Below, piece by piece: positions 24,430-57,480 of a stretch of DNA of 64,000 nucleotides. The stretch is from NCBI GenBank assembly GCA_010909165.1, contig MU008155.1, forward strand, positions 1,488,001 through 1,552,000. The letters are read 5' to 3'. The translations under genes were made by a program, and so were the position numbers. Within the stretch, counting starts at the first letter, position 1, and the number at the start of each line of letters is the position of its first letter. Origin of the DNA: Anthoceros angustus. Taxonomy: Eukaryota; Plantae; Anthocerotophyta. Below the pieces are notes generated by a model that saw only the letters and a program-made list of their open reading frames with translations, made no database searches and was not told where the DNA came from.

Positions 24430-25870
24430 ATGGACGGGCCGCCGATGCAGTCCAGCCTGGCCCCCGAAACGCAGGAGGCTATGGTGGGGGCGCTGATGGC
24501 CACAGCGGCCGCTATCAATGTGGCGACGCAGTTTTTGGCGGGGAATTCTACCACCAATCCGGTGGCGTTGGCCAAGATGATTGAGGAGCAGGAGGAGAGC
24601 AGCACGGACCTGATCGCCACCGTGGTGAATGGATATGTGAATGACCCCCTGCTGGTGCACATGACGGACATGCTGCCGAGCACGCAGCTTTTCGGGACGC
24701 GGCGGATGTCGTCGCAGTGGTACATCAAGCCGCGGTCCAAGATGGAGATTGCGGTGCAGAACGAGGATATGGCGCTGTGGAAGCAGTTTTTCAGGGTTTC
24801 GAAGAGTTGCTTTGAGTACATATGCTCGCTGGTGGCGCCGGATTTGCAGTCCAGGACTCCGGACTCGTTCAAGTTCATCGGTGGCAGGGTTATCACTGTC
24901 GATAAGCAGGTGAGGGGTTGGGGTGTTGTGTGAGCTGGTTTCGGGGTGAGGTTGTGAGGGCTCACGATGTGGTGTGTTGGATTAGGTTGCGATTGCTTTA
25001 AGGAGGCTGTCGCACGGGGAGGGGACTAATACTATTGGCGATATGTTCGGTGTTGCCAAGAATACGGTGAGTAAGATCACTTGGCGGTTTGTGAAAGCCA
25101 TAACGAGGGCAGGGGGCCACCACCTGCAGTGGCCTCATGGAGCTGACATGGATATGGTGAAGGAGGGCATCAGAAGCATGCATGGTTTCCCCAACTGCTG
25201 TGGTGTTATGGACGTTACGCACATACAGATCGAGCTTCCAGCTGGAAATGCTGCTGCTGATTGGGAGGACAGGGAGCACAACTACAGTATGATTTTGCAA
25301 GCTATCGTGGATGCCAACTTCAGGTTTTTGGACGTTTTTGCTGGCTGCCCTGGGAGTGTGTATGATTCCCGGGTCCTTCGAATATCTGGGTTTTACAGGG
25401 ATTGTGAGAACGGGGTGCGTTTGAACGGCCCTCAGGAGGTGATTCACGGCTTCCCGCTGAACGAATATGTCATCGGGGACGCTGCGTTTCCTCTTCTACC
25501 ATGGCTCATCACTCCCTACACGCCGGCAGAAATATGCTTCTCCCAGTTCAGGCATGAATTTAACTTGAAGCATGCCGCCACCCGAGTTGTTGTGGATGAT
25601 GCTTTTGCAAGGTTGAAAGGCGCTTGGCGAATTCTACATGGCCTGTTGCGCCACCCTGATATTCAGAAGTTGTCGCACATCATTTACGTCTGCTGCCTGC
25701 TTCATAACATCATGATTGACACAGGGGAGGAGTTTGACGAGAATACTTGTCCACTGGTCGGCCACCATGATGAGGGCTACTTTCAGCAGATTTCATTGAC
25801 AGCTGAGGAACGGGGCAAGCACAAGAGGGCTGTTCTCACGGACTACCTTGCCGCAGCAGATTTTGCCTGA
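24430..25870 (+). CDS. Harbinger/PIF-type DDE nuclease, ALP1/HARBI1-like (2 exons, about 454 aa)
   Basis: Exon 24430-24909, phase-0 intron, exon 24986-25870. Motifs DKQ|VAIALRRL, NCCGVMDVTHI, YSMILQAIVD, GDAAFPLLPWLITPY, CCLLHNIMID, HHDEGY. Confidence 0.93.
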
Positions 25871-28989: not shown

Positions 28990-31900
28990 CGTCTGCATCC
29001 ACGAGAGTCCCCCTCTGCCAGATAAGTCACTGATCAAAGTGGACTGTGAAGTCATGTAGGCCTAGGCCCTCCATGTGAGGATAGTGTTTGTTCTTAGGAA
29101 GGCCCTTCGTCAGAATATCAGCTGTGTTATCGTCTGTATTAATGTAATCAACCTTGATAACTCCACGAGCTACAACATCTCGTATGTAATGATGCTGCAC
29201 CTCGATGTGCTTAGTACGTGCATGGAAGGTGGGCTTAGCCACTAATTCAAGAGCTCCTGTATTGTCGCAGAGTATCGTGGTTGATCAGCCGCATGTCCGA
29301 GGTCAAAGGCGAAGCCGTTCATCTCCGCCTCCAGCGCAGCCATGGACTTGTACTCAGCCTCTGTTGAGCTTAAAGCTATCGTAGGCTGTTTCTTGCTGCT
29401 CCAATTCAGAGCGGCTGAGGCAAGGAGAAAACAGTATGTCGAAAGGCTCCGCCTTGAGTATGAATCCGAGCCCCAATCCGCATCTGTGAAGCCAGTAAGG
29501 GTAAGCTTGGATTCACCACTACGTCTGTACATGAGTCCATATTTGACTGTGCCCTTCAAGTAACGAAACACCCTCTTTACAACTGTCCAATGAGCTCTCC
29601 CGGGGTTCTCCAGGTATTGGGAAGCTATGCAAACCGCATATTGGATATCGGGTCTTGTCCAGTTCGCTACGAACAAAGGCTGCCAACACCATGCCTGTAA
29701 GGTACGTCCTGCATGTCTTTGATTTCTTCTTCTGTCCGGGGCATTGTGAACGTGTAAGTTTTGTCCCTGTGGCATAAGGGGTGGTTGCAGGTCTGGCCTG
29801 ATCGAGGTTGAACTTCCTCAAGATTTCATTAACGTACTTGTACTGGTGAATGATCATCAGGCCCTTAGCTCGAACTCGCAACAATTGTATGCCGAGACAG
29901 AACTTGAGCTCGCCAATATCCTTCATATCGAATCTGGTGCTCAGCTGTTCCTTGACGACTAACAACAGCTTCTGATCGTTCGTGGCAAAGATTACATCGT
30001 CAACATAAAGAGCCAGTAGGACAATGGAGGATCCTTGGGTAAGCTTATAGACATTGGTGTCAGCATTGTTTTGAACAAATTTAATGCTGAGCAGGTATAA
30101 GTGCATGGTTATGTACCATACTCGCCCGCTCTGCTTAAGGCCATAAATACACTTCAAAAGCTTCAGCACTTTGTGTGGGTGTTGCAGGGTCTTCATAGCC
30201 TTCAGGCTGATACATATACAGCTCTTCATCGAGCACTGTACAAGAAAGCCGTGCAAACGTCCATCTGCTGGAGGTCCAGATCATACTCCGAGGCATAAGC
30301 TAGGAGGATCCGAATCGACTGGGTCCTCACAACAGGTGAGAAAGTCTCTTGATAGTCAATACCCTCAACCTGTGCGAAACCACGGGCTACTAGCCTAGCC
30401 TTGTATCGTGCTACCTCACCCTTGGCGTTTAACTTAAGCTTGAATACCCATTTGCAGGAAATAGCCTTGCGTCCTGATGGGAGGTCTGAAAGCTGCCAAG
30501 TTTTATTCTTCAAGAGAGACTGGTATTCTTCCTCCACAGCAACCTTCCACTGTGCGGACTGTGGGCCTGAGAAGGCTTGAGTTAAGGTGGTTGGCTCATC
30601 AGGAAGAGAAGGGCTAACTGCAAGGTGAGTGCGAAAATCGATAGACCGAGCAGCGGGTGCATTCCATTCTCGTGGGGTCGATAACGTGGAACGCGTAGCA
30701 GTGAGCCGCTTCACATCTTCCGGATCGGAGGCGTTGTCTGAAAATAGTAATGCTCATCTTCATGAACAAGATTCGAGGTACCTTCCCCTCTCTCAAAATC
30801 GGTAGATCATTGTCCATCATCCAAAATAGCATGTTGATGAACTTTACCCTGAACAGGTGCAGCTGGAGGGATGGCATGACCAGGCGGGACTGGAAAAACT
30901 TCAGGATCAGGGGCAGCAGGCTCTGTGTCATCTAAGGGGTATTCTGCAGCTATATCTGTCCGGGTGTCCGAAACAGGATCCGCAGGTACTGATTCAACAG
31001 CTCGGGAAGGAGCTTGTGGTTCAATAAATGTAACACTCCTGGCAAACACGATAGATGCCGTTTCTGGGCTGTACAGCTTATATGCCTTGGCCTGCTCGCT
31101 ATAGCCCACAAAAATAAGGGCCTGTGCACGCTGATCAAGCTTCTTACGCTTCTCAACTGGGATATAGGCAAAAGCCTTGGAGCCAAAAACCTTGAGATGA
31201 AGCAAGCTGGGCTTCTTGCGCCAGTACACCTCGAAAGGAGTCCTCTGTGGAACTAAACTGGTCAGCACCCTGTTGAGGATGTATGTGGTTGCTACAACTG
31301 CTTCAGCCCAATAGCCTTGAGGTAAGCCTGCCCAAAGTAACATGCTTCTTGTCATGCTGAGTAGCGTTTGATTCTTGTGTTCTGACACGCCATTTTGCTG
31401 GGGCGTGTAGGGAACTGTGAGTTGTCGCAAGATACCAGCCTCTTGGAGAAGATTATCAAAAGATGAGTTAACAAACTCCCATTGTTCTGCCCGAGGATCT
31501 TCAAGAACTTGCTCGCCTCGAAAGAGCAAGAATGAGCCACCGAAAGTAGCTAAAGGTATCACTTTTGGCACGCATTGGAAAGGTCCATGTGTAGCGATCT
31601 GCATCATCGCGAGGGTGAAGTAGCGAGCCTGGGGAGGGCTCATGGATTTTCCGCATATATCAAGATGCACTTCCCACTTCGTCCTGTAGCAGTGCATTTG
31701 GAAAAGATGACTCCTTTTGTTTAGCCAGTATGCACGACTCGCAGACAGGTAAATGCTTGAAACATTTAGGAAGAGGCTCCTTGTGACATTCGGTGACGGA
31801 CATGTCAATGAGCTTAGCCCTATTAACGTGACCTAGTCTAGCGTGCCATAACACTGCCTCCTGTTGTGCACTAACTGTATTCATTGTTGTTGAGTGTGCG

Positions 31901-32728
31901 ACAGGCTGGGGAATAGCAGCAGAGCCGCAACTGATATTCAACCTATACAGATCGTGATCTAAAATACCTTTGAAGACACATGTATCCGGTATGTCTCCTC
32001 AGAGAAGGAGCAAGTGTTAGAATCAAAGACGCATGCGTATAAAGGTATGGAGGAGCTGGCTCATGGACATGAGATTTTTAGCCATACTTGGGACATACAA
32101 GACATCACTCAACTTAAGGTGTATGCCGTCCTGCAGCCTAAATATGCAAGTACCTCTGCCATCAATGTGCAAACTGGTTGTACTTTGCTCGTCTCCGAGT
32201 AGCACCTTGTCACTAACATGACCAAGGTTAAGGGTAGTAAACAACTCCCTGTCCTTGCAGATATGAGTCGTGGCTCCGGAATCCATGTAGCAGCTGCCAT
32301 CATCATTCAAGGAACTGGACAAGCACGCAGTAAGAATCTTAACTGGCGCCTTTGTTTCTCCAGAGTTCTTTTCCTTGACAGCAGAGTTTGCCTTGTCACT
32401 GTAGCTCACCCTTCTTTCTTGGCATTCTCTTGCCCAATGGCCAGGGGTGCCACACCAGTGATCCTGGTCTCTTAGTTGAACTGCTGGATGAATCAGTGCG
32501 CCCAGAAGAGCCTCCAGTCCCTGGTTACTTCCCTTTCCTTGCGAGAATTCCACATTGCTAACACGCTCGCCTTATTCTTAGGAACATGACCAGAGAGGGT
32601 GCGAGCCTGTTCTTCCTGGTAGAGAGCGCCAATGATGTCCTCAACAGTGGGGGCAGCAGTGGCGACAGCTCCAGCAGCAGCAGGCTTGACAGGGCCATTC
32701 TGGGTTGTGACGAAATTCTGATATGAGG
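28990..32728 (-). mobile_element. Ty1-copia, 3' part (gag C-terminus, protease, integrase, RT, RNase H, PPT)
   Basis: YMDSGATTHIC, LWHARLGH, YTPQQNGVSE, YKARLVARGF, LALYVDD, GFTDADW, TKHIEVQHHYIRD. PPT complement CCCCCTCT at about 29010. Confidence 0.93.
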
Positions 32729-32754
32729 AACAAGGTCTCCTAAGACCTGGAGAC
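32729..32754 (+). repeat. Left TIR (17 bp perfect, 23/26 bp extended)
   Basis: AACAAGGTCTCCTAAGA-CCT-GGAGAC, preceded by GAGG at 32725-32728. Confidence 0.9.
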
Positions 32755-35076
32755 ACACCCCTCTTTTTAGAGACAGAGGTCGAAATGACCAAATTTTACA
32801 TTTGAAATCAAATCAAATCGTGATTTCGTGGGTTTTCGAACCTGGTCAAAAACACACATCGCAGATAACCAGGGTTTTCATAACACCATTTCTAGCTTTA
32901 TCATGCCATTTGATCTTGCAAATAATGGTCCTCGGTTGGATCAAGTTTGAAAATACCGCGTTTTGCACTTTCAAGGACACTTTTCCAAAATCGGTTAGTC
33001 TTTCAAAATCGCCAAGTTTGTGACGCTTTTGAATATATGTACTAAGGGTCAAAGTCCAGAGACTAATGTTGTGGATACATTTCATTTCCTTCACATGCCC
33101 CTCATGTCCGGACATCCCGACGGTGTCTTTAAATATGTGGCAACGTGAAAGTTCAAGTTCAATATGTCTCTACATGTCACTATACATAATACAACAAATG
33201 CATCAACACATGTCATTTGGTATCCAAGTGGTGAATTAGATGTATAATTTAGCCAAATGTAAACTAACTAATCGCCTTCTACGCATTTGCCATCCGAAAT
33301 ACACGACACAAGGCGAGCTTAAAACCCCAACACATCACTAGACCAGACAGTAGGAGCCAGTGATTTACTTCACTTATAAAAAGGGGATAGCTTAAACACC
33401 GCCAAGTCTGTCATGAGCAAGAAAGTCGAGGCGAAGAAAGCAGTTGGCCAAAACCCGGATGTCCGGTGAGCACCAGCCCACACAATGCCCATATTGACCA
33501 TGCTTTAAACGATGTACCCCACGTTAAAGACCAAAGTGTGTGTAAAGGATTCAACAAAAGCACTATTCGATTGAGTGAGCATCATTGCGAAACCAAAACC
33601 AATAGTGCTCATTCCTAGGCTAGTCTCAGTACACTCTATGCTGAATGCACCACACAAGAAACCAACACTAGCGGCGGTCAAACCGGATGTGCCATTTAGC
33701 ACTGCATCAACACCATCAAATATCCGCAAGAGAACACAACCACAAGCAGATGGCGAAACATCGATTCTGATCTCGAAGGCGAAACCATACTTGCCATCCT
33801 CACTCGGGCTCAGCCTTCACGGTCGCTCCCTCCACTGCTGCCAAGGCCTTCGCGGCTGTTTCTGCTGCGACCATCACCAGGGCTAGCTCCCTCTGCCTCC
33901 TTCTCGCGGGCCATACGTCGTCTTCGGCATCCAACTCCTCTGTAGACAACTCCCGCATCTCCGGCTTCACTGCCAAATATGGTCTGAATCTTCGTAGCTC
34001 CCTTTCAGCTGTCTTCACCTCCTCCCCGGCAAGTGAGAGGTCACGGGTTATATCCCTTGGCTTTCCACCCTCATCCCCTCGGGAAGGGTCCACACCCCTA
34101 GCGGCTCCCTTAAGGCCACCACACCCACCTCCCCTTGGAACCAACAACAGGCTTGGGGTGAGGAAAAGCAGGTGCCATGGGCGGATCGCTTCCAGCGACA
34201 TTGCCTCGCGTGTTGGACCCCTGAGGCCCCAGAGGAGGTCTTCCTCCTAGCCCTCTTGACTGCGATGTCGAGATGTCACCCGTGGGGGTGACTGTAGCCG
34301 CCTCGTTCTCATCGCAATCGTGGAGAACTAGCACACAAAGGCGGGTGCCACAAGTCCGAGGTTAGTAGCCGGCCGGCTGCTGCACCAGCCAGGCGAAGCG
34401 AGCACCAGGCGAGCGGCGGCGCCAGCAGCACCGGCCAGGCGAAGCCTTTTATGTTCCAATCTCCGATAGCGCCGCAAATGGCGGTCCTCCTCAACCAACA
34501 CGCACCTCGCCACCCAGGCCACCACGCCCGCTCACCCCGGTGGCACTCGTGAGCGCCAGATCGCCAACCACGGCGCGGGCTCTTGGAGCGTGATGGAAAA
34601 TAAAAGAAGAGTGAGGGCAGAGAGTACCGGCCGGAGGAGGGTTTACGTCTCTCCCCATTCCTTCCCATCCTACATACAATTGTCGAGAAGCAGCCACGCA
34701 GCCGAAAAAAGCAGTACACGGGCCATACACCGACAAGTGTGAAACCTTACAAAAACATGATCGTGTTGTGCCGGATGTCCGGTGGAAGCCATAGAGACTC
34801 AACCACATTGCCAACACTCCAAAAGAGGAGCACACATCCTAATAAAACAAACCACCTTCACATAACTAGGAAATCACGTCTGACCTCGCTCTCTCAACAT
34901 CAAAATTAATTCTAGGTGGGTTAGGATCGCTCCTCGCGAGTCCACACCGCCATCAAGTCCACCAAATAATCACAGATGCATCGGAGGATTCAATGTTGTC
35001 CAGTCTTAGAATCAATCCGCTCATCACCGGTTTCATCACCATCAACAGGAGGAAGCCGGTAGCTTCCTCACTCTAC

Positions 35077-38000
35077 TCAGTCAAAGACCTTCCTCTTCAA
35101 CATATCCATGGTGTTTTTGCTTAAAGTCCTGTTCCTCGTCAACACAAAATCGTAACCCATGATCGTGGTCTCCAAAAGCTTGATGGCTTGGACATGTTTC
35201 TTCAAAGGATTCCGGCGCCTACCTTTCCTGTGACATGCTGGTGGGGTACTCGGCACCCATTCCTCTGAGTACCTACCCTCAAGTGCATTAGGGTTTTCTG
35301 TGCGCCACCAGTGGATTTGTGCTAGCGGGTCAGCAGCTTCATGGTCCACCTCCACAACCTTGCCTAGCGGAAGGGCCCTCGGGGTCATCTGCGGCTGGAC
35401 CGCAATCATCATGCCCGCTTGGATCTCGATAATAGATCCTCGGCTTGTTGTTCCAACGTTCCGCCTAGCGGCGATCCTGCGGGCACCGTATAAATCTCGG
35501 TCTGTCCAAATATTCGTCTTGCTAGTGCATCCACCACTACTTGTCCGAAACATCACGGAGGTTCTTGAGCATGCGCTTCCGGTTATACCATGTCCATGCT
35601 GGTTTCCAATGGACGAAGATGACTGGCGCTACTAAACCCGCTATTGCCAATTGCTCCTCCCAAAACCATCCCACCAAGATAGTAGCGCATTGAAGATTTG
35701 TGGAAGTTCTTAACATTGTCTGTCTTCCACTCCAGCCATAGCCACGCCGACATACATGTGGATGCTCCTTGCTCCTTCTGCCCTCACATGCAAGTGGTAC
35801 CGGTGGAGCCGCAACAATCTCCCTCTCGCACTCCATCCCGTAATGAACACCACCATCGGGGTCCAGTGCAGTGGAAAATTGCTTGCACCTCAAAGACCGC
35901 CACAAACTCATGACTAGGCAACTCCTCCAGTGACCTTAAATTGATGTTGAAAAGCGTGGTTGTGTAGACATGCGTTGCGGGGAGAACCTCGGGCGCCATA
36001 AATATTGCTTAAAATCGCACCTCCTTCATGAGATGGACCTTGGTAGGAGTATAAGCCCTCCAAGCAAGCAATCAACTCCGGCAATGTGTATGCCTCTTTC
36101 AAGTTCAAGACAACTGTAAAACGGAAAACATTTGATCAATCGATCATGGGTATGGCCAACAATGAGAAACCCCACTTTAACCTTCTTAAAATACCAATGG
36201 ACACCAACATCGCGCCCACCTCCACGGTTCTTGTTACAGCAGTATTGTCCATCCGGTAAAGAGTTTGCAATTGCCCTCCCACAAATTAATCACATGCGGA
36301 TTACGCAATTGTGCCGTTAGGATCATTCCGAATATTGGGGTAGCTCGGTACACATAAGTGCGCATGAATTTGTTGAACACCAAAACCCCAACCACATGGA
36401 GAGATTAGCGGCTATCCACATCTTTGGGCACTCTACGGAAATGAGGCAACTCGGTTTTTCGTCCATACCATCTATCGCAATCCCTATGTACTTGGTCGGT
36501 TGAGCCATACACTTCCGCGATGCGCCATTTTCCTCCGCTCCATCTTGTTGATCCGGTGATAATTGAGGAGTTCTCTGTTTATCTCGCACATACAAGGGCC
36601 ACCATCGGTACACCGCGCAACAAGCAAGTGTTCTGCTGTGTAAAGTCATCGTGCCAAACCCTAAGTCTCCTAAGGCCATAGGGTTTGCACTCTACCGATT
36701 GCGGCCATCCAATCACCGGACATCCGGTGCTTACGATGATAAGGTAGAGGGATTCTCGGTTGTACCTTGCTCTCTCGTTCCGGCGTTTTTATTTTAGCTT
36801 TTAACTTCTCACAGACGATGAGACGGAGTGGTTGGATCTTAATTTTGACACAGTGCCGTATCCACAACTTGCGAAATAGTCTAACATACATGCAATCGCT
36901 CTTGCCTGTTGTCTAGCATACTCAATATAAATCTCCTCCTTCGTGAATGTCAGGCGTTAAAGACTTCCCTATTGGGTAGCCTTTCCACATTTCCTTTGAA
37001 AACAAATCCATCCACATTACACAGTAGACCATACGGTAGGTATTTTTCCGGCACAGGCTCAGCTCGTCCCCTTCAGTACGGGTGCATTCCGTCGGTGCCC
37101 CAATGCAAAACACACGGCAAAATGCCCTCACACACACCGAAACCTTTCCGTGTGGTAGCTTGTTCAACCATCCGGTCCACAGTCATCTTCTTGATCACAT
37201 CAATCGTCCGCAAATGCTGTTCTGCTCCCCTTACTCATCGAAAAAAAGGCCACGCGACAGGCTTTTAGCCTGCAATGTCCCAACTTTCCTATGCACTTTC
37301 TCCCACAAGCCTCCTCAGTGCACGCACATAGCCGCCTACGATGCTTGCCAAAACATTGTCCACCTTATTCCTTGCGGCATGGTTCTTGGTGGAACACATA
37401 ACCCCATCCATAGTGCAACTCCAACCCCTCGACTTGGGATTAGCAGGAGGCGGATTTCGCAGTGCGGAGGCCTCGTCGCCTCCTCTCCAAACAAAGGCAA
37501 TCGGATCTCGTACCACATTTGGTCTCCCCGCCTTCCACTCCCGTAACCTCCTTCACCCACTCGCAAACTCCAAACCAAAATCAACAATGCCATGGACCTT
37601 CTCACCACACCGGCGACTCAAAGAACACTCTGCTTCGATTCCTATTTTGGCCAGCGGTGAAACACAACGTTGAAAATACTCCTGCGACCCACATGGATCT
37701 GTTGTAGGCGCCACCTTGTCTCCCTCTGGCCGGGACACACCGCTTGGCCGGATTTGGATCTGGGCAAAACATCCTCGCCAACTTCTTCGCACCCGGACTT
37801 GAACAAGCCGGTAAATGGTACTGGCGCAGTGCCGAGGCGGGCCAAGAGGATATCGGGGAGGGATATCGAGGCGCCGCCTCTTTCACGGCGGCGGCACGAG
37901 CTACCGCCGATCCACATGGTCTGCAATTTCTTCGATCGCGCGCTCGTTCGTGTCCAGATCGAACAAAAACAAGTCTCCATCGCTTGCGACCTCGTCCGCT

Positions 38001-38277
38001 ATACCACCGCAGGGTGTCTGTCAAATCGATGTGCCCAGGTCTTCGACTACGGGCAGACATTCACCGGACGTCCGCGGTTCCCTTGGTTGTCCACTCAGCG
38101 CTGCCGCCAAGTCCACGATGTCGGACTCGGACACATGCCCGAGATCTTCATCGTGATCACTAGTCCGTTCACCAAATCAAAGAACTCTTCCTCGAGGTCA
38201 CGCCATTGTGCGCTACCAAAGAGTAGAAGAAAGTGCTGCTCACAATGTGCTCGGCGAAGGCAGCGTAGCTAGACATG
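35077..38277 (-). pseudogene. Sola-like (DUF7869-type) DDD/E transposase, frameshifted
   Basis: Acidic N-terminus, VCVRAFCRVFCI, FRKLW..HCVKI...C, KYIGIAIDGMD, MDN, VGFLIVGHTHD-IDQMFS-FTVVL, and a C-terminal beta-barrel-like segment (GMMIAV...LGKVVEV...IHWW). Start approximate. Confidence 0.75.
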
Positions 38278-40299
38278 TTCAAACTTGTATCCGCTCTCGT
38301 GGCCCGCTCGTAATCAATTATGACGATTGGCGGATGTCCGAATTGCGGCTCTGAGATCCTGGCGGTCAAGTCTCGTTAATTGCCTTAGATTGCAAGGATC
38401 GAGGAGCGAGGTTATGCAAAGGCGAAACATGTTTAGCCGATGGCAAAACATGGAATATTCTCATAAATATGCTTTACTACTTGTTTTGCCGGATGTGCCT
38501 TTGGGCGGCGAATGAAGGCTAAACTTGGCGGATCGAGCATTGGATGATTTCCCATGCGGGGAGTGGAATTGCGAATTGCTGACGATGCCGGCGTCTCTTG
38601 CACATCGTGACCCCACATAGTCATACTACCTTCCTCCTGCTGGAAGACCGATTTTGGCGCCAACGAGTGAGATGGTGGATATATTGAGCGAGAGGGACAA
38701 AGCGATGATTTGTCTCTTATCCCTCGTATTCGACCGCGGAATCGGAGTGTCTTTCGAATTGCGTGGTTTCATTGAAGGTCAACACCGCTCCAACCTCACA
38801 GCCATCCGTGTTTCACGAAGAACATACCGGGGTCCGGTTGTTGATGTCGCCGCCTTTGACAATCCTTAATGCTTGCGATCAATTATGTGCTTCCCTCATG
38901 TTATACTTGCTAATATGTCCAATGATCTCCTTGCTACAATGGGTTGTTTGGCAGATGGGCCCTCAAAGCAGGAGCAAAGGCGCCAAACCCATGGAGCGCT
39001 AGCGGGGAGAAAACGGACCGGGCAGCCTTTGATTCGCAGGGCCCCATGGAGACTGACCGGTCCGGATCCGGCATCAAGATGCATACCGACACCGTGAACC
39101 CGCGCCCCGACAACGTCCCCAACTAGAGCAACTTTCCAAAGTCCTTACAAGCAAGCGGACGACATGATCGGAATGATGCTTGAGACAACTCTCCTTTCGA
39201 TATATCCGGGGAGTTGGATCGCAACAACGTCTGCGGGGCGGTTGGTATTCATACCTCTTGGGTGCTGGACAAGCCTTCAAAGCCCTCATGTCTTGGCTTT
39301 TGTTCACGCATTGTGGAGAAGGATGACCAAGGGTATGTCATTTTTGTGTACATCAAGACAAACCGACAAACGACCCCAATGTCGTCCAGTCTACTCACCG
39401 TGATCAAGAATTTTGACATTTTGCACCGGTAGGAAGCGTCGTGAAGAAGCTGCTGCAGGCTTGCGAAAAATGATGGGCACGAGTTTTCCACAAGGTAATG
39501 CACCAAGTATGTTTAGAAGGCGTTAGGCTGCGGTACTCTGTCAGTTCGGAACCCGTCGCGCGATGGGTGGTAGTGGATCATCGGCCGGTGAAAGCGGCAT
39601 AGACGGCATCGACTTGACGGAATTCAAAGCATCCAAGCGGTGCATCCAAGCCACACCAGTGCATCCGCCAGAAGCAACAGAGCCGCATCGGAAGCATCTT
39701 CAAGATGGCGGAATCATTTCACAAGGGCATCTGCAGGAAAGCAACCATGCTTCTCGATGCAACCGAGCGATGCATCCGAGGGAAGCATCCCCGCAATGCC
39801 ATGGTGGGGAAACATCCTAGCACCGCATCCGTTGGTCCAATACAACCAATTGCAAATGATCCAGAATATCGGTTTGAGGCCGATCGTCTGGTGTGCACCG
39901 GACGTCCGGGTTTTGACTCGGAGACTTTGTGATTCTTCAAGGCTCTGAGGAAGCTAGCTTGACCGGGTATGACGAGGATATGGAGAACGACGGTGAGGAC
40001 ACAGAGGACTATGGATGGCGTCCTACCCGGGGAGGACGAAGATGATCAAGACGGTGAAGATGGCTCATGGGAAGGAGACTGCGAGGCTAATGGCGATGAG
40101 CATGACCTCGAGGTCCTGTCCCTGCATGATTGCTCGCGGTCTTGAGGCTTGTCCTGGATCGCAGGAGGGTGCAGCAGCCGCCCGTGGGGAATGCATCAAA
40201 GGCGACGGAGGAGGCGGAGATGGCAAACCAATCGATGAGAAGGCGAGGCCAGCAGTAGTGGCAAAGCCAAGAAGGCAAGGGCAAACGAGAAGCCTGCAA

Positions 40300-41000
40300 T
40301 TGCAATTGGGAAAGAGTCGGAGGAGGAGGATGAACCGCTTGTGTTTGTGGAGATTGCCAAGGATAGCGCGGTGGCTGAGACGATGAGCTTCGCCATCAAA
40401 GCGTATGCAAGCCGGGTGGAAAGGGACGTATCGCAATGAAGAGTGTGGAGTCTACTCAGCGCCAATCAAGTGTTGCGGACCCAGGAATTGTGTCGAGCCG
40501 GTGAGGAAGTTGGATCTCGCATGGGTAGAGGCTTTGATGCAAAAGATGAAGCATTGTCCCCTGGGTGGGCGGTGTGTTGCCCATGGTTGTGGTTGTGGAT
40601 CCGTCACAATGTGCTACAAGAGAATTTCACGTTAAGGTGGACGGGGGATTACATTTTTTCGTCTTAGGGGAAACCATTCCTTCCGCAAGGTCCATTGTCT
40701 CATCTACCGTGGAAGAGTACAAGTGGATGGATGCATATGTGCTCACTGGACTCGAGGACGAGATGAGGATCGTAGCCACGGACCACAACACCATAGCGTG
40801 CCAGAAGACATTTACCTTCATGGACCGTGTGCGTTACATCGTGAGTTCCTCGGAGGTCAAGGGTTTGAAGTGTGACGTGGATTGGAAGCTAGATGTGTAT
40901 GCACGATTAGGCGGGATCCCCAAGTGGGATGCAGCCAAGCATAAGGTGCGATATCACCGTGGACAATAGGACCGGATTATTGTGTGGCTAAAGTTGACGA
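40300..41000 (+). pseudogene. ParB/Sulfiredoxin-like domain
   Basis: PVRKLDLAWVEALMQKMKH...LPMVVVVDP...HFFVLG(G)NHS...AYVLTGLED.EMRIVATDHN, read across 1-bp frameshifts. Confidence 0.7.
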
Positions 41001-41529
41001 AGAAGTGTGGAGGTATGTGGAGATTTTCAGAAGTGGGAATGTAAGCAACTAGCGGATAGATGTTTTGACTAGCAGCGGTGAAGGCTACAAGGAAGTCGAG
41101 GAAATCTGCAGCGAGAGATCTTGTGGTCATCGATGTGAAGGAATCGGATGTTCTGTGAGAGTGTGGAAGTGTTTTCGGGGTATCGAGCACTCGGCAGAGC
41201 AACAACAATTTGAAGGCAGCATGCATGAAGGTTTTGGCTGGAGAAATGAGCTTGAAGCAAATGCAAGAGTGGGTGGAGAAGGCCAAAAATTGAACCTCAT
41301 TCACATCACCCTTGCGAAGAACATTGTGAGACTTTCCAGGTTAGGGATCGATACCCTCAATACGACGGTGGAGCAGATCGAACTTTCAACGCATTCAAAA
41401 ATATGGTAAGTGACATGGCAAGCAAGCCACCGTGCATGTGATATGTACTAAGCAAATATGCTTGTTTGCGCATGGTTTGTTTCCACGTCGGCTTGGAACT
41501 TTGCCATTGCGCTGCGGCCAATGCCATCT

Positions 41530-42560
41530 CGAGTGGAGTGCACTCACGACAATTTCAAGGAACATGTTTTGAAAGCCAAAGCTTGGAGGATAATGGCGGA
41601 TGGCGACAATTGTTGGAGGCCTCGATCAAAAGTTACAGACTTTCGGGGATGACGCCGGAGAACCCGGTATAGTATGTATGTCAACATCGCGGATGGCCCG
41701 TTCTAGAACCCGTCCGTTTGCCATGATTCCTTGGACTTGCCCCGGGGTTGAATTTGGATCTAGGGAGTATGACACGCGGTTCACTCGTCGAATTTGAGAA
41801 GATCATAATGACATTCCGGGCATCACAATCGAGGTTTTTCGAGTCGTGGTATTCCATTCGCACGATGATATGTCCATGGTTCGTGAAGTTTTGCTTGCGC
41901 ATGTAAAGGTGGTGTCACGTCTACGGCACAAAACTAATGTGGCATCCTCCAGATAAGTCAGATGATGCGGTGATTACATCACCACGGCGCAGCTCCTTAA
42001 AGCGGGATTGTTTGCCTCAACATTTCTCCCTCGATTACATCGGTGATGTTGACTTGCCGGGTTGAATTTGGATCGAACTCAGGTATGACACGCTTCACTC
42101 GTGAATTTGAAGATCATAATGACATTCCAGCATCCTAGCGTGAGGTTTTTACGTGGTATTCCATTCCGATGATATGTCCATGGTTCGGAAGTTTTGATGA
42201 TGTAAAGGTGGTGTCCGTCATGGCACAAAACTAATGTGATCCTAGATTGATGATGGTGATTACATCACCACGGCGCGTTGCGAATGTGATTTCTCCTCGA
42301 TGCATCGATGTTATGAATAGCAGGGTTGACTTGCTTTCAGAAGATGGAACATAAGCTATGTTACAACACGAGATGATAGGGTTTCACCGTAAGCCCATTA
42401 GATTGTTGAGGAAGTTGATTGAGCGTATACAATGGAAGGCGAGTGGATCCTAGATGTGGGAGCTCGTTGGGTGGCGACAAGTCGGCATGTCATTTCGATA
42501 GGCGTAGATCCCAGCGGTGCAATTCATGGTTTGCGGCTCAATCGATGGACAAGCGGCGAG
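41530..42560 (+). pseudogene. Beta-class N6-adenine/N4-cytosine DNA methyltransferase domain (N6_N4_Mtase-like)
   Basis: Motif IV-like VNIADGPF (41680-41703), VVVFHS, WHKTN, then motif X-I FHRKPIRLLRKLIER-(Y)TMEGEWILDVGA (42382-42463). The order is that of beta-class amino-MTases. Confidence 0.8.
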
Positions 42561-43988
42561 GAGGAGGAGGTGGGAGGCGTTGGCGTGCGCACAAGGCGCG
42601 CATGGTGAACAACATCGCGGTGGAGAGGTGGGCGAAGGCGTGAGACAAGGCGCGATGCACAATTGGGCGTGTGAGATCCACTTTCGTGTTGGACAGTCGA
42701 CAAGTGCGAGGTTAGTGAGAAAGACGCAGACATTGGCGAGATGGGCCAAGAGGCTTTTCTGCAACATTGGGGCGATGGATCGGTCCATCCCTTGAGACGC
42801 CGACGAGAAGTATGATGGCGATTGACTCTCCAGACAACCAACGGCCAAAACAAACTTGTAGCATCCGAATGCAGGATTGGGAGAGAGTTGTGAGGGCTAG
42901 GAAATCTGCAGACGACCAGTTGGGTTAACGTTGCTTTTGTGTTGGACTCAAAGCTTTGAGACAACTTGCGATGCGACCACATGTCTTGCACAACCGGGAC
43001 CCGGTGATAAAGGCTGTTCGGTGTCCATTGTGTCCGATTGATCCAAGCTCGGCTTGCGAACCATTTTTGTTCACGATGGTAGGGCAAGGGAGAAACATGG
43101 TCGGCGCAACAACATTGCATCAATGAGCATCCTCATGCATATCCTTCAATCGAACACCGGAAGGGATTGAGAACTCGTCACGCCGCCCCAATCGCCATTT
43201 CGAGCCTTTGCCGTCACGCGCCGCATTGGTGTGCATGAGTTGGCCCCTGCGAGGCGGCGTAGGGAAGGCGTGGTAGCACCCGATTCCGAGCCCATGTGCG
43301 TGAAGTGTCATGGCCGAGACCTTATCGGAATTGCAAATCGCATATCGACCATGGCGGGCGCTTATACCGGACCAGCGAATAGCGAAATGCATTGCTATAA
43401 ATTGGTCGAACACGGCCACACGGGTCATTGTGGTGGAAAGCCTTCGCGGTGATTAGTCGCGGACATGATGAATGCATTCATCATATGCATGTAAAGGACG
43501 ATGTCACGATGCGTAAATACGACCGCATTGAACCCGCAATTGTAAATAGATTGCCGCGGTGTGTCCGAAGGCCGGTATGAAGTTGATTTCATCCAATTTC
43601 GGTAGTGCAACCTCGGGCTGCACCGGCTAAAATGGATTCATACCATTCGCACATTCACCGGATGTCCGGGTCATACAAGTCTGATCAATGTCGCTCTTTT
43701 TCGGTCGGTCGGACCCTTAAACTCATTTTGTGGACCTTTTTAATATCCATTTTATGCGGCCTATAAATTGCATATGTATCTTAAAGAATTGGCGAAATTC
43801 ATGAGAACTTGGAGGTGTAGACCATGTGAAGGTCTTATTACCTTAAAACCATTGAAATGCATGGTTTCATTCTTAAAGTCACATCTTTATCATGCAATTT
43901 TTTTAAAAAATTCTGCAAATTATGAAATTCAAGCTTTTTTGTTTCCAGGTCCCAAATTTCACCCCCTCAAAACCAGAGACGAGGAGCC

Positions 43989-44014
43989 GTCTCCCACTCT
44001 TAGGAGACCTTGTT
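43989..44014 (-). repeat. Right TIR
   Basis: GTCTCC-CAC-TCTTAGGAGACCTTGTT followed by GAGG at 44015-44018. Confidence 0.9.
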
Positions 44015-44541
44015 GAGGTGGGAGACTGATAAGGAGCTGGGATACAGCTTCGACTTCAGGCATCTTATTTCCAGTCAGTGACGTGATCACGCAGATGTCG
44101 GAACTTGCTGGTATGGACAGCAATCTTCTCTCCCTCCTTCATTTTCACGGCGTAAAATTCCATTCTTATAGCAGATAGGGACATCATGTTAGTAGAATGA
44201 TAAGTGGTTTCTAACTGATGCCATATCGCCTCTGCTGCGTCCAAGAACTCAACATCAGGCACAAGATCTCCATCCAGGCCATTGATAAGGAGAGCCATGG
44301 CAATTCCATTGTGATGTAGCCACTTGGCATAGTCGTCAGGGTCTGTGGTCGGATCAGGTTTCTTGAACGTGCCATCCAGGGCTGGCCAGAATCCACGAGC
44401 CGACATGATGGCTTTCATGCGGACTCTCCAAATAAGGTAACCACTTCCCTTGAAACGATCCTTCTCTTTTAACTCAGAAGTAAAAGTTAAGGCAGGGTGT
44501 GCAGGGCTTGGAGCAGCCATCACAGATGAAGGGGAAAACAA
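44015..44541 (-). pseudogene. gag: Copia gag N-terminal part (continues at 32728)
   Basis: FKGSGYLIWRVRMKAIM...AEAIWHQLETTY...MKEGE...QLLISLP joins to SYQNFVTTQ across the insertion. Confidence 0.88.
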
Positions 44542-44859
44542 TCAGGAGAAGTAGTCGTCAATGTCAAAATCACGATAGGACATATATGACTACCTTACAG
44601 AGAAGAATCTTGACCTGATCCTGCCCTGCATTGTTATTTTTCATGCAATAATCTGAAAAGCTGACTAGTGTAGTGTAGGAGAGGAGGTTGGGGGGTTTAA
44701 CAAGAGGCGGGGATAGTACGAAATTATGCCCTCCTCATGTTGAACTCCTCAACTTCTTTTCAGACACTAGTAAACTGCTGCGCTTATAAGCATAACCCTA
44801 AAACACATGTCGTTTCGAGAAACTAAAATGAAAATTAGGGTTGAAGCTAACCACCACCT

Positions 44860-45914: not shown

Positions 45915-46769
45915 TTTCCATAGGAAGAAGTATGCTATACAATGTTTATGACAAGTGGGGAACAAGAGAAGGAGACTTTGTGAGATATATGAAGATCCAA
46001 TGGGGAGAGACTATAGATATGTGGTTGTGTAATGCTAGAATGTTGCCTCATGCAGGGCAACATAGAATGGTTACTACACCAATTAGTGAATGTGGTTGTC
46101 TGACATTATTGGTACCAGCACTTCACGAAAGAAGGGGGATACAGGCATAACAAGAAGCTGGAGGCTTTGGAACAAAGCGCTATGAAGGGTGCAAAAACTA
46201 TTTCTATGAGCTCAGTTATTTTACCGCATGCCGAAAATGTTGCTGCACATTGTTTGTCTTCATCGACCCCTAACTTGTGGTATGTGATTGAACATGTTTA
46301 TTCTCCTTGGGCTACATGCTCATGTCCAATGGGGAACAAAGGTTTCATCTGCAAGCATGTGGTGAAAGTTCAACAACTCCTTGGCATACACAAGGATGGT
46401 GCAGCAGCAGCTAGGCAAAATGGAAGAACAAATGGAGCGTATGTTGCTGAAAGTAGTGATACCAACAACTTGGCTATGGCTTTTTGGATGCAGGATCAAG
46501 AAGCTCCACACATTGTATTGCCTAGTAACCCCTTGGTGGCACCAATATGTAAGACACAATTGGAGATGGCAAAAGAAAAACGGTTGGATTTCACTAAAAC
46601 GGCATGTGCTAAAGTAAATGATACCGCATTTGAGCGTTCAGATTTAGCTTTTGGGATAGCCTGCATTATGGAGCAAACTCAGCGGGGGCGATTAGTAGCG
46701 CGGTCGAAGAACCTCAACGGAAACAAGTGTTGGAAACTTTTGGTGAGAATGAGGGCACGAACAGACTGA
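45915..46769 (+). pseudogene. SWIM zinc-finger MULE-like transposase, 3' fragment
   Basis: YMKIQWGETIDMW...LPHAGQ and the SWIM motif ATCSCPMGNKGFICKHV. Confidence 0.75.
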
Positions 46770-53010: not shown

Positions 53011-53200
53011 GCCCTTCTCGCCAGAAGAATGGGAGGAAGCTTCTGTAGAACTACGAGTGCTGTGTGACGTTAGGTTCCTTTTTGTCTCTAGTCAATGTTT
53101 TGCCAACGATGCCGAGATGTTGACTCATCGAGTATTATATCACTGGGGCTGAAGCGGGACTTTGTGCCGAGGGAAAGAGCCGCCAGGAGCAAAAAAGAAG

Positions 53201-55261
53201 ATGGATGGGTCACAATTGCACGGGCTGCTTCCATCTGCCACAACACTTCTTTTCTTGGCCTGCGCCGGGCTGGTGATATGGGTGTTTGCGAGGACCGTGG
53301 TGACTCCATGGAGGGAGTGGATTTTCTACAGGAAGCAGGGAATCAAGGGCCCCCCCTTCAGACCGCTCCTGGGCAACTTTCTGGAGCTGCGCAAAATCCG
53401 AGGAGCACCCCGTCCTCCCAGTTCCATCGACCACACTCGGTTCGTGGAGGCATCCAGCCCGTACCTGATTCACTGGGCTAACACATATGCCCCAGGTGTC
53501 CTCGAGCTTGCAGACTCCAAACCGAGCAATCAGCACAGACTGTCCGTGGTTGGATGATCGTGTTGTGAAGCTTACATGTTTGCCGTTCATGCGCAGGACA
53601 ACAGCGCTTGCTGTTTCAGACTCTGAACACTACGAATGTCATCCTGTGGGATGCCAGTTTGGCGAGGGACTTTCTCTCAAAACACAGTCTCTACAAGAAG
53701 TCTGCCCTGTCAAAGCTAGTGACAGAGAAATTAACAGGGAAGGGTCTCGTGGTGCTGGACACAGATGAGTGGGCACTGCACCGCAAAATTCTGAACCCCG
53801 GCTTCCGCCTCCACTTCCTGAAGGTACTTTGCAAGTGCCTGCTTCTCCTGAGTGCCAAGTTGGTATGATGGAGAAGCACTGACTGTTTGCAGGGGAACTT
53901 GTGCATATTTGCCCTTGCCCATTCTCTACTGGTTTCAGGGATTTCATGACTACATGACAGAGGCAGGCAAGGAGCTGGTGCAGGACTGGTTGCAAGAAGT
54001 GCATAAAGGGGATGGCTCTGCAGAGCTCCAGATCAGCGCCGGAGTCAGGAAGGCATCTCTGGACATCATAGCGCGGGCGGTATTTGGTGCAAATGTGGCT
54101 GGCAGCATACCTGTGAGCATTGCTCGGAAGGTCTTCGAGACTCTTCAGGAACGCGTGGACGTTATAGTGCGTAACGTATTCACTTTGAGTACCTTGGTCC
54201 CAGCACTCCGGTAAAGACGGTCAAGACTTCGAAGAATGTATCAATTCATTCTACATTTCAAGATTCTGCAGGGACATCTCTGTGGATTCAGACTCATGAC
54301 CATCGCTGGCTGGTGCTGCAGACTGTTCTTAGAGACAAAGGAAGAGAAGAAGTCAGCCAGAGATAATCGCTTCATCGATGACCTACTCAAGGAGATTGTG
54401 GATGCTCGTATCAAAGCTGTTGAGTCGGCTTACACAAAGGACAGCCCAGCCCTTGACAGCGAAGAGAACCATGGCGGCCATGATCTGCTGGGGCTCATGG
54501 TGGACGCCATGTTGAGGGGCAGCAAGACCATGGCCAGGGCACAGGTGCTGGAAGAGTGTCGGACCCTTTTTGTGGCTGGACAGGCCACAACAGCCGCTCT
54601 TGTTACATGGACTCTGCTGATGCTTGCTCATCACCCAGACTGGCAGCACAAGGTCCGGGAGGAAGTGATACAAGTCACTGGCAACACTGGCGTACTTGAG
54701 GCCCACAGCATGGACAAGCTCCGCATTGTAAGTTGCGCTTGAAAACAATGGACCCATCATCCCCGTGGCCACGTGCAGATTCTCTGTGCTTACCTGGTAG
54801 GATCCTGTCTGACATGGACTTGGACAACGCAGATGGGAATGGTCCTGAACGAGGTGCTCCGGCTGTTCCCCCCAGCAAGTACGGTGCCACGGGAGGCTGT
54901 TGTAAGGCACAAGATTGGCGACCTCGAGATCTTGCCTGGGACCGACGTCACCTTCCACTTAGCCTTGATCCATGGATGCGAAAAGTACTGGGAGGATCCT
55001 TGTGCATTCAAGCCGGAGCGGTTCGAACGCGGAATCGCTGCAGCCGCTCTGAACAAAGCCGATGCTTTCTTCCCTTTCAGTGGAGGTGGTCGAGTCTGCA
55101 TTGGACAGAACTTCGCTTTGTTGGCAGCCAAGAATCTTGTGGCCTCTGTTGTGCATCGGTTCAGCCTTCGTGTGTCCCCCAATTATCAGCATATCATTAG
55201 CGATGGTTCCCTTTCAGGCAGCAGCTTTGTGTGTCTGGTGGTACAAGAGTTGAAGAGTTGA
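53201..55261 (+). CDS. Cytochrome P450, CYP72-clan-like (copy A)
   Basis: GIKGPPFRPLLGN, WALHRKILNPGF, ECRTLFVAGQATT, EVLRLFPP, KPERF and the heme motif FSGGGRVCIGQNFA. Multi-exon; some splice sites unresolved. Confidence 0.92.
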
Positions 55262-57480
55262 TTGTCTGGCCAGGTCGTATCATGAACGTGAACGTCAATT
55301 CATCTCTGCAGCAAAGTGCATAAATCAGAGGACATCTGTTGTCAGAGCCTGCTCTGATCGTGAAAGAATGGAGGCTACGCTTCCAACTGAAGACAAGTTT
55401 CTCTAATGCTGAGGAGGTCATACAAAATTCCTACATGCATCTGTACGTTGCAACGGCGTGAGGCGAGTGGGACTTTTTACTTTAGGAAAGGGTGTTCTCA
55501 CGCAGCCATGGATACATGGATGCCTTAGTTGTTCTTTCTTTTAGAGACGTTTCCGGGGCTTTATAGATGAGGAGATACAGCCCAGCCCCGTCTCAATAGT
55601 TCTTTCCATTCATAATGCACGCAACGTTTGCTTCTCTACACAGAGTACGTGGGACTTTCAAGCTTCCACGGATTAGGGCCACGGTACAATGGCAATTGAA
55701 AACAAACATCCACAGCAGAGGTCAGGTAGGTCAGTTTCAGGAGCGACGGTGAAGATTGTGTCTACTTGCTACGCATAAACTCGCAATGTGGTGGCAGCTT
55801 CTTCCAGCCGCACCAACGGATTGCAGGAACTGAAAGTTGAAGCTGTTTTTGAGACTTGTAAATTCTTGGAAAGCAGGAATGTTGGATAGCAATTTTGAGT
55901 TGCCCAGCGATCCAAAGAGCGGGCTAAGCTTAAGCATGCAGGTATTGCGTTTGTGGTTCTGCCCCTGGAAATGAGGTGGTAAGTGGCTGGCGGGAAGAAG
56001 TGCACCACGGGCATGGTGCTGACAAGGATCAGCAGCCGAAGAAAGGGGGAAAACGCATCCAGGACCAATACCGTGGACATCGGTACCGAAGTTTTCGAGG
56101 GTCTGAGCGCTTCTTGTTGCTAGCAGCCCAACCGCAGATTGTTGCTCCCAGTTATTGGCCAGTGAGACTGCTGTCTAACCTCAAGGGAAGCATGTCCAAG
56201 TTATTGAGAACTTTCGGATGTTGGGAACGTCCAGATTCTGAAGCCATTTAAATGTCTTAATTGCCACTGCAGTGTGCAGCGAAGTACAGAAGTCGAGAGG
56301 AATGCACGATGCTGGTCCTCTGTCTCTTTTAGGTACCTACTTACAAGTTGAGCACAGCTTGCCAGAGGACGGCTTCACAAATCAATCAGCTCATCCTGCT
56401 CCCGCTTTCAAACAAGAGGCTCCTACACCTCCATCACGTAGGCTTTTAAAACATCTAAGAACTGCAGCTGGAAACGATTGTGGGCAAGAAATGATGCCCT
56501 GCATCGTCACTGTCTTGTGTTGCAGGATATTCTTAGAGACAAAGGAAGAGAAGAAGTCAGCCAGAGACGATCGCTTCATCGATGACCTACTCTAGGAGAT
56601 TGTGGATGCTCGCATCAAAGCTGTTGAGTCAGCTTACACAGGCAGCCCAGCACGATCTGCCGGGGCTCATGGTGGACGCCATGTTGAGGCGAGACCATGA
56701 CCAGGGTACAGGTGCTGCACGAGCGTCGGGCCCTTTTGAGAGGAGGCGTACTTGAGGCCCACAGCATGGACAAGCTCCGCATTGTAAACAATGGACCCAT
56801 CATTCCTGTGGCCATGTGCAGATTCTAGTAGGATCCTGTCTGACATGTTCTTGAACAACGCAGATGGAATGGTCCTGAACGAGGTGCTCCGGCTGTTACC
56901 TCCTGCAAGCACGGTGCCACGGGAGGCTGTTGTAAGGCACAAGATTGGCGGCCTCAGATTTTGCTTGGGACCGACGTCACCTTCTTCATAGCGTTGATGC
57001 ATGTGTGAGAAGCATTGGGACGATCCTCTTGCATTCAAGCCGGAACGGTTCCAGCACGGAATCGCTGCAGTCCATCGACAGCAGTTCCCACCAGGGGTTT
57101 ACTGGTTGACAGAATGGACCCAACAGGTGTGCTTCTGGAAGCACATCTACTGGGCCCACTCTGTCAGCAAGTTCCATCTCCTGTACGAACTTGGGACGCA
57201 ACCTGGGACCCATTGCGGCTATTATCTCGAGACGTCCAACATTTCGGCAGCGTCGACACATTGGGTGGGACATAGAACCAATCGTCACCAGCACATTCGT
57301 CGTTCCGTATTACAACCCACAACACAAGCGAAGCTTCCCTGTTTCTTCTAGCGAGCCGGGAGTACAAGAGCACAGCATTACGTGGACCTCGTAAACTCAC
57401 AGTTTGGATTTACTCCAAGCACGTGTTTGTCTCGTCCACAACACTTCCCTCCGGACTGTTCAGGTTTTATATCCTCCTGT
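54690..57480 (+). repeat. Segmental duplication unit, repeated at about 60320-63130
   Basis: P450 3' end, flank, LRR-like piece and P450 pseudogene recur near-identically about 5.6 kb downstream. Confidence 0.9.
56526..57075 (+). pseudogene. P450 3'-half pseudogene with internal deletions
   Basis: In-frame TAG after DDLL; EVLRLLPP and KPERF remain; heme motif absent. Confidence 0.85.

Follow-up and report, generated by a model that had tools for sequence, protein, structure and literature searches.

Does the DNA transposon at positions 32729–44014 of the Anthoceros angustus contig MU008155.1 stretch analyzed here (64 kb in all, hereafter the window) carry genes for recognizing or modifying its own DNA, or does it carry an unrelated gene as cargo? 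The initial annotation of this locus described a mobile epigenetic system, with a minus-strand transposase facing a plus-strand ParB-like and DNA amino-methyltransferase region. Our analysis favors, with a probability of roughly 0.7, a decayed Sola1-type cut-and-paste transposon that once carried head-to-head transposase and methyltransferase-type accessory genes.

A TIR transposon nested in a Copia gag gene

The element is 11,286 bp long and interrupts the gag of a Ty1/copia element on the minus strand. Its ends are formed by a perfect (17/17) terminal inverted repeat (TIR), AACAAGGTCTCCTAAGA, at 32729–32745 with the reverse complement at 43998–44014, and the similarity between the two arms runs on to 26 nt at 88%. 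Both ends are flanked by an identical 4-bp target-site duplication (TSD), GAGG, so that the repeats and duplication of the initial annotation are confirmed; the termini read AACAAGG…CCTTGTT (AAC…GTT). Allowing up to three mismatches, AACAAGGTCTCCTAAGA matches nothing in the window besides the two ends. A 17-mer inverted pair arose in 1/300 shuffles of the 13-kb region, against 0.005 expected analytically. In sum, 32729–44014 is a genuine TIR transposon insertion.

32725–32728, no strand: left TSD GAGG, identical to 44015–44018
32729–32754, plus strand: left TIR, perfect over 32729–32745, 26 nt at 88%, terminus AACAAGG
43989–44014, minus strand: right TIR, perfect part 43998–44014
44015–44018, no strand: right TSD GAGG
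29519–32724, minus strand: host Ty1/copia downstream of the insertion, with the remainder of gag including the zinc knuckle, protease (DSG), integrase region and reverse transcriptase
44019–44560, minus strand: host Copia gag upstream of the insertion

Pfam matches in the downstream part of the Copia element comprise SH3_retrovirus (integrase-associated, 30807–31808) and RVT_2 (29519–30256). Deleting the element together with one GAGG in silico yields LISLPP followed by a one-base frame slip, and the earlier description of a gag rejoined as LISLP-P with one homopolymer base is accurate; with both GAGG copies kept, the join reads LISLPPPSYQNF. The join is of little weight as proof, since other frameshifts were already present in this gag.

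Remains of a plus-strand accessory gene

Between the TIRs, an accessory pseudogene spans ~39.2–42.6 kb on the plus strand. The region is homologous to a small set of proteins from one other organism (P0002, P0003, P0004, P0008 and P0010), and tblastn with these relatives returns a colinear series of matches along the window, from the linker through motif I.

39184–39429, plus strand: possible N-terminal domain remnant, the best match in the window of the relatives' N-terminal hidden Markov model, weak (expectation value E 0.19)
40164–40373, plus strand: basic/acidic linker (…EEEDEPLVFVEIAKDSAV), interrupted by an in-frame stop (P0008 by tblastn, E 0.004)
40504–40966, plus strand: conserved domain, RKLDLAWVEALMQKMKHC / WVGGVLPMVVVVD … VLG… / EMRIVATDHN … DWKLDVYARLG, frameshift at 40557/40562
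40975–41330, plus strand: middle region, with DYCVAKVDEEVWRYV, VRVWKCFRGIEHSA, ACMKVLAGEMSLKQMQEWVEKAK and KLNLIHITL, three frame changes and a stop
41554–41947, plus strand: N-terminal half of the methyltransferase-type domain, with FKEHVLKAKAW, the motif IV position, EFEKIIMTF, VVVFHSHDDMSMVREVL and HKTNV, two frame changes
42051–42276, plus strand: direct duplicate of 41734–41990 (motif IV to WHKTNV), 80% identical, offset by ~317 bp, with stops
42357–42584, plus strand: C-terminal half of the methyltransferase-type domain (tblastn with L003:2709–3260, E 0.036, colinear)

The conserved domain at 40504–40966 matches P0002–P0004 with E 1e-15 to 1e-11 by phmmer and 1e-20 to 1e-25 by tblastn. 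Further downstream, 41554–41947 aligns colinearly by tblastn with two contigs of the relatives, L013:633–1046 and L003:2709–3260 (E 1e-4 to 1e-3); within it, FKEHVLKAKAW lies at 41554–41601, the motif IV region at 41730–41822, and VVVFHSHDDMSMVREVL…HKTNV at 41831–41947. The QKP box of the window is wrecked by stops (SP*AH*IV), and motif I is shortened, reading EWILD----VGARWVA against EWVVDGCCGSGSGLVAG, again with flanking stops. Over the whole series there are ~10 frame changes, mostly within contiguous homologous sequence, and at least six in-frame stops. Introns were considered as the source of the broken frames and rejected, since the frame changes fall inside contiguous homology and the stops inside aligned blocks.

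Relatives in one other organism

All relatives belong to a single organism, represented by the Logan assemblies of its two runs SRR33208241 and SRR33208242; the library searched holds 1.8 billion protein representatives, and the family was seen nowhere else in it. Whole-library phmmer with 40550–40966 returned three real relatives, P0002, P0003 and P0004, the other three matches being repeat proteins. A profile search added P0008, P0009 and P0010, once more only from Logan contigs of the same two runs. Scans of metagenome and viral contigs were blank, as were tblastn of the L003 methyltransferase piece against plasmids and a homologous-protein search with that piece, the latter limited by its length window and word filter.

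The identity of the C-terminal domain comes from L003. Its segment 2709–3260, which lies downstream of the P0007 frame and is cut by the contig end, matches positions 75–213 of the Pfam N6_N4_Mtase (PF01555) profile at E 3.1e-6, scoring 27.7 bits where the cut-off is 26.7. By tblastn the same segment finds 393 phage records (best E 3e-6), and the matches listed sit in annotated DNA methylase genes. For the window, the methyltransferase assignment therefore follows from a two-step chain, in which the window is homologous to L003 and L013, and L003 in turn matches PF01555 and phage methylases. The N6A/N4C methyltransferase claimed earlier for the plus strand is in this way partly confirmed, via its relatives.

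L003 and L005 are 100% identical except for a 266-bp segment (L005:1890–2155) that is absent from L003; as read off the sequence, this segment begins with GTAAGT and ends with CAG, as a GT-AG intron does. L003 is therefore the spliced form of L005, and a defective gene copy is transcribed and spliced in the other organism. Both contigs carry an in-frame stop and frameshifts, and L001 also has an in-frame stop; the frames of the short contigs L004, L012 and L013 are open but partial. The copies fall into at least five diverged lineages. Where estimable, the ratio of nonsynonymous to synonymous substitution rates (dN/dS) between them is 0.09–0.2, with dS >1; the gene was thus long under purifying selection before the copies decayed. 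Such diverged, multi-copy and mostly defective lineages fit a transposon-borne gene. The TIR was searched for in the relatives' contigs and not found. In L001, a ubiquilin/ubiquitin-domain gene (L001:5408–7290, minus strand) sits beside the relative on the opposite strand, with no recognizable TIR between them.

Methyltransferase motifs and catalytic competence

We aligned the motifs of L003 and L013 with those of five phage enzymes. In the motif IV columns, LLLLDLPRG of L003 (within 2404–2709) and L013 (within 633–1046) stands against LIIADIPY, LILCDLPY and LIIADVPY of the phage enzymes. The QKP box is recognizable, with SPYQKP of the relative under HPTQKP of the phage, and motif I VVDGCCGSGSG of L003 lies under VIDPCAGSGTT with GSG kept. 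Motif IV (LLDLPRG) precedes motif I in this alignment and in the window remnants alike, which is the beta-class order.

The motif IV position of the window (41730–41760), placed by alignment, reads LGLAPGLNLD where the relatives have LLDLPRGLNLD, and no DPPY-type motif turned up at a plausible position in a six-frame regular-expression scan. The aromatic residue at the end of motif IV is absent from 3/3 copies covering the site (DLPR in L003 and L013, GLAP in the window). This residue is present in nearly all active amino-methyltransferases. The L003 and L013 lineages, both with DLPR, are 56% identical with dS >2, and dN/dS over the motif IV half of the domain is 0.14. On this alignment, the catalytic competence of the accessory family is doubtful.

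The conserved domain and the ParB label

The conserved domain upstream follows the pattern R-K-L-D…W-V…L-M-x-K-M, L-P-M-V-V-V, V-L-G-G-N-H-S…A-R, and its predicted strand-helix order loosely recalls ParB/Srx. The label "ParB-like" given to it in the initial annotation nevertheless found no backing in any of five approaches. Pfam at E up to 10 returned no ParB match for P0002, P0008, P0009 or the window pieces, and a profile search of PDB sequences with the conserved domain returned nothing. An hhalign comparison with an F-plasmid protein containing a verified ParB_N (PF02195) gave a probability of 0.2%. Two AlphaFold models reached pLDDT values of 47.5 and 44.9, and Foldseek found nothing. The arginines of the nucleotide-binding ParB Box II (GxRR), for which a requirement has been described (bioRxiv 10.1101/2025.10.10.680097), are absent, the equivalent position reading VLGGNHS(L/F/W)xAR in all relatives. 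The label is thus unproven and without statistical support, though in so small a family a highly diverged ParB fold could escape these tools.

Two phage proteins were considered as ParB–methyltransferase comparators and rejected: Streptomyces phage gp47 has methylase and restriction-endonuclease-like domains, and Ruminococcus phage gp46 has DUF4317, not ParB. Among the phage and plasmid methylases retrieved there was no ParB–methyltransferase fusion, all of them being stand-alone.

Transposase remnants on the minus strand

All reading frames inside the element are fragmented, and the transposase proposed earlier for the minus strand survives only as broken pieces.

36326–36691, minus strand: putative transposase remnant with IAIDGMDEK, placed like MMDGANQS of Sola1-1_Ec32 (by eye; no Pfam match)
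36029–36289, minus strand: putative transposase remnant, PDGQYCCNKNR, 23 amino acids (aa), LIVGHTHDRLIKCF (DUF7869 sub-threshold; D-x5-NKN … VGHTH layout as in Sola1-1_Ec32)
35917–36135, minus strand: putative transposase remnant in another frame, NHAFQHQFKVTGG (compare NFQAFKIYKEG of Sola1-1_Ec32; by eye)
35080–35628, minus strand: longest open stretch of the element, 183 aa (no relatives found)

The piece at 36029–36289 matches Pfam DUF7869 with E 1.7e-4 and 21.7 bits, below the cut-off of 26, and the match covers LIVGHTHDRLIKCF; nothing else emerged when ~40 open stretches from the two strands of the element were scanned with Pfam. In the transposase of Sola1-1_Ec32, a giant Sola1 transposon of Ectocarpus, the order is MMDGANQS, then VDNTVAENKNN followed by 26 residues and MMVGHTHIQIDQIFSCF, then NFQAFKIYKEG (PMC12477816 supplement). 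The minus strand of the window reads IAIDGMDEK, then PDGQYCCNKNR followed by 23 residues and LIVGHTHDRLIKCF, then NHAFQHQFKVTGG; the three motifs are colinear with those of Sola1-1_Ec32 in a comparison made by eye. With moderate confidence we regard the element as Sola1-like.

Stops and a frame change split the transposase pieces from one another, so the transposase is dead. A homologous-protein search with the 183-aa stretch (…HWWRTENPNALEGRYSEEW…), limited by its length window and word filter, was blank; the stretch could represent the C-terminus of the transposase or else a third gene. Both element genes are thus pseudogenes in this copy, which consequently has no present function and is a dead insertion.

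Despite its heavy load of frameshifts and stops, the element has a CpG observed/expected ratio of 0.90; the flanking 20-kb stretches have 0.77 and 0.63.

A candidate binding site confined to the element

A near-palindromic 12–14-mer, CACCGGACRTCCGG, occurs in six copies, all of them within the element. Searched as the 14-mer CACCGGACATCCGG with up to two mismatches, it matches solely inside the element within the window. Searched as the 12-mer CCGGACGTCCGG with up to one mismatch, it gives six sites, at 33455, 34771, 36716, 38064, 39898 and 43658, and none in the remaining 52.7 kb, where several other transposons lie. Shuffles of the element contain the 12-mer 0.024 times on average and at most once.

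33455–33468, minus strand: motif copy 1, CACCGGACATCCGG, 726 bp from the left end
34771–34784, minus strand: motif copy 2
36714–36729, plus strand: motif copy 3, with both flanks, full 16-mer CACCGGACATCCGGTG
38062–38075, plus strand: motif copy 4, CACCGGACGTCCGC; a weaker core at 38331–38340
39896–39909, plus strand: motif copy 5, containing the perfect 12-bp palindrome CCGGACGTCCGG
43656–43669, plus strand: motif copy 6, 345 bp from the right end

The sequences flanking the copies are mutually unrelated. The motif spans both gene halves and therefore ties them into one unit. We consider it a candidate protein-binding site of the element, for which either the accessory protein or the transposase would be the binder.

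The relatives carry a variant, CACAGGACATCCTGTG (in L003/L005; also written CACAGGACATCCTG(TG)). The linker coding region of L003/L005 contains CACAGGACATCCGG (L003:763), and the L005 intron holds two copies of TGCACAGGA(C/T)(A/G)TCCTGTGCA, 48 bp apart (L005:2034 and 2082). Relative to the window motif the change is symmetric, from C to A in one half-site and from G to T in the other. It is this symmetry and the location of the relatives' sites, rather than their counts, that make them suggestive. Deamination of a perfect palindrome was the first reading of the central CG-to-TG/CA changes; since CA/TG is found in the relatives too, it may instead be the functional form.

Proposed history and alternatives

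On the reading we favor, the element landed in the Ty1/copia gag and would have generated the 4-bp duplication on arrival. Its active ancestor would have possessed a minus-strand gene for a Sola1-like DDE transposase and, head-to-head with it, a plus-strand gene for an accessory protein of ~1,100 aa. This protein would have comprised an N-terminal domain, a charged linker, the conserved domain, whose fold is unproven, and a helical middle part, with a methyltransferase domain at the C-terminus; the last of these would be a beta-class N6_N4 DNA-methyltransferase derived from the phage D[LIV]PY group. We infer that the accessory protein or the transposase recognized the CACCGGACRTCCGG sites scattered through the element. 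Such recognition would concentrate an S-adenosylmethionine (SAM)-binding module on the element's own DNA, where, given DLPR, the module may either have written N6-methyladenine (6mA) or N4-methylcytosine (4mC) or only bound DNA.

Several observations weigh against this explanation. No piece of the window is recognizable alone as a methyltransferase: the plus-strand pieces match no Pfam family, and a phage-methyltransferase profile run against the six-frame window gave nothing significant. The ParB fold of the conserved domain is unsupported. The evidence for the transposase is weak, consisting of one sub-threshold Pfam match and motifs compared by eye. No copy of the accessory gene is demonstrably intact, most having stops or frameshifts and the rest being short partial contigs. 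At up to three mismatches the relatives hold ~5 motif sites against ~1.4 expected by our own calculation, modestly above chance. Finally, no second TIR-bounded copy was found in the window or in the other searchable collections, so the case for linking the two genes consists of a single copy, the motif common to them and the Ectocarpus precedent. As to that precedent, the accessory protein of Sola1-1_Ec32 was compared by description and did not appear in the whole-library phmmer with the conserved-domain piece of the window; the accessory genes of the two elements may be far apart or independent acquisitions.

One alternative concerns the enzyme itself. The methyltransferase-like domain could never have been active in this eukaryotic family and could instead be a degenerate SAM- or DNA-binding module, comparable to METTL14 or the inactive methyltransferase domain of DIRS1; the protein would then be a DNA-binding or regulatory partner of transposition and would not write 6mA or 4mC. 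We consider this quite possible, if short of an even chance. The loss of the motif IV aromatic residue otherwise found in nearly all active enzymes, with DLPR in two well-diverged lineages and GLAP in the window where the phage columns have D[LIV]PY, speaks for it, and inactive methyltransferase domains borne by transposons are documented (DIRS1). L003, on the other hand, retains the SAM-binding motif I (D-x-C-x-GSG) and the QKP box, the dN/dS over the motif IV half indicates constraint (though constraint is no proof of catalysis), and the two DLPR lineages stem from one organism and from defective copies. A different doubt attaches to the CACCGGACRTCCGG motif, which might be a host transcription-factor site (core GACGTC, a C-box-type ACGT element) or the relic of an internal short repeat. 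Its core does contain ACGT, its copies are spaced 1.3–3.8 kb apart and keep no constant position relative to the ends or gene starts, and the L003 copy falls in coding sequence, reading HRTSG. The confinement of 6/6 copies to the element, in a window with several other transposons, speaks against such an origin, the unrelated flanks argue against a dispersed longer repeat, and the variant of the other organism alters both half-sites in step. We therefore hold this origin of the motif to be rather unlikely.

The plus-strand gene might also be cargo with no role in the life of the transposon, either a Pack-type captured fragment of host or foreign origin or a separate nested element. Giant transposons often carry unrelated genes (PMC12477816), a single TIR-bounded copy is available, and the relatives' contigs show no transposase nearby, L001 having its ubiquilin gene instead. 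Several of these contigs are apparently transcript-derived and would not reveal a divergent neighbor anyway. The same opposite-strand pairing has been described in Ectocarpus Sola1-1_Ec32 (PMC12477816), copies of the motif are spread over both sides of the element, almost from end to end, with a variant in the relatives' gene, and the lineages of the relatives look as expected of a transposon-borne gene, all of which makes a cargo origin improbable. In the opposite direction, the family could be a eukaryotic, transposon-borne analog of parS/ParB. A DNA-binding domain would act at CAC-N-GGACRTCC-N-GTG sites, joined to a phage-derived methyltransferase fold whose motif IV, rebuilt as DLPR, would write an unusual mark or serve as a SAM-dependent switch, and a Sola1 transposon would thereby discriminate its own DNA from that of the host. 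We regard this as a long shot. If true, it would place Sola1 self-recognition where nothing of the kind is known, possibly in a non-seed plant lineage.

Relation to described systems

For the decayed two-gene Sola1-type element that we favor, the closest described counterpart is Sola1-1_Ec32 of Ectocarpus, published in 2025, a 21.5-kb giant Sola1 transposon in which the transposase lies opposite a gene annotated as ParB-like plus DNA methyltransferase; its authors proposed that the accessory protein binds and modifies the element's own DNA (PMC12477816). A 4-bp TSD is listed for both Sola1-1_Ec32 and Sola2-1_Ec32, the termini of the former read AACCG…CGGTT, and its best BLAST match is a moss Sola1 (PMC12477816). 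Our element resembles it in its TIRs, 4-bp TSD, AAC termini and D-x5-NKN … VGHTH transposase layout, and in an opposite-strand gene of ~1,100 aa ending in an N4C/N6A-type methyltransferase domain. It differs in length (11.3 kb against 21.5 kb), in its TIRs (17–26 bp against 282 bp) and in that both its genes are dead.

With phage and prophage beta-class N6_N4 methyltransferases the accessory family shares motif IV before motif I, a D-[LIV]-P variant, the QKP box and the GSG of motif I (best tblastn E ~3e-6), but it differs in an R at the motif IV tyrosine position, in its introns and in long extensions at the N-terminus. Fusions of a ParB fold with N6_N4 (PF01555) are enriched in phages (bioRxiv 10.1101/2025.10.10.680097); in contrast, the upstream domain of the eukaryotic family reads VLGGNHS, lacks the Box II arginines and is called ParB by no profile. 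Among transposons, Plavaka elements of the red alga Bostrychia carry PAG2, an N6A methylase plus SET, and PAG3, ParB plus a 2-oxoglutarate (2OG) oxygenase; inverted-repeat arrays adjoin the ParB-type gene, and binding to the element's own DNA was proposed by the authors (bioRxiv 10.1101/2025.02.11.637652). Like these, our element is a DNA transposon with a DNA-modification-type accessory gene, and the same role is here proposed for the CACCGGACRTCCGG motif. The superfamily and the domain combinations are different, however, and the tandem arrays there contrast with dispersed single sites here. Eukaryotic genomes also contain amino-methyltransferase domains of bacterial type in Marchantia DN4MT1, with a canonical TSPPY motif IV, and rotifer N4CMT. 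Both are intact host genes present in single copy, of TSPPY type and with proven activity, whereas the gene described here is transposon-borne, multi-copy and decayed, with DLPR.

The locus is thus a dead member of an already described class of transposon, and the idea of own-DNA modification is already in print. The mobile epigenetic system of the initial annotation is accordingly supported in part: the TIR-bounded, divergent two-gene layout and the element-confined motif speak for it, and the dead copy, the DLPR/GLAP motif IV, the unsupported ParB label and the existing publication detract from it. Transposons with their own DNA-modification genes form a recent and small class (Plavaka/KDZ with TET/JBP, red-algal PAG, Ectocarpus Sola1), and this locus contributes to it a second Sola1-type case, very divergent and from a different genome. 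Beyond the published description it offers two handles: the element-confined motif, which renders the own-DNA-binding idea testable, and the changed catalytic motif IV, which warns against assuming that 6mA or 4mC is written.

Other features of the window

Rfam and tRNA scans of the window were empty, and the window looks almost wholly repeat-derived. At 25043–25870 (plus strand), an uninterrupted 275-aa open reading frame (ORF) matches DDE_Tnp_4 / Plant_tran with E 1e-33; this PIF/Harbinger transposase is seemingly better preserved than the genes of the element. A SWIM zinc finger is encoded just past the Copia gag by an ORF of 200 aa (46167–46769, plus strand), possibly a fragment of a Mutator-like element (MULE)-type transposase. 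Large direct repeats pair 53195–57784 with 58814–63420 (94%), 57780–59631 with 62154–64000 (99.3%) and 18–1780 with 11205–12979 (89%); they are probably long terminal repeats (LTRs) or tandem or nested retroelement copies.

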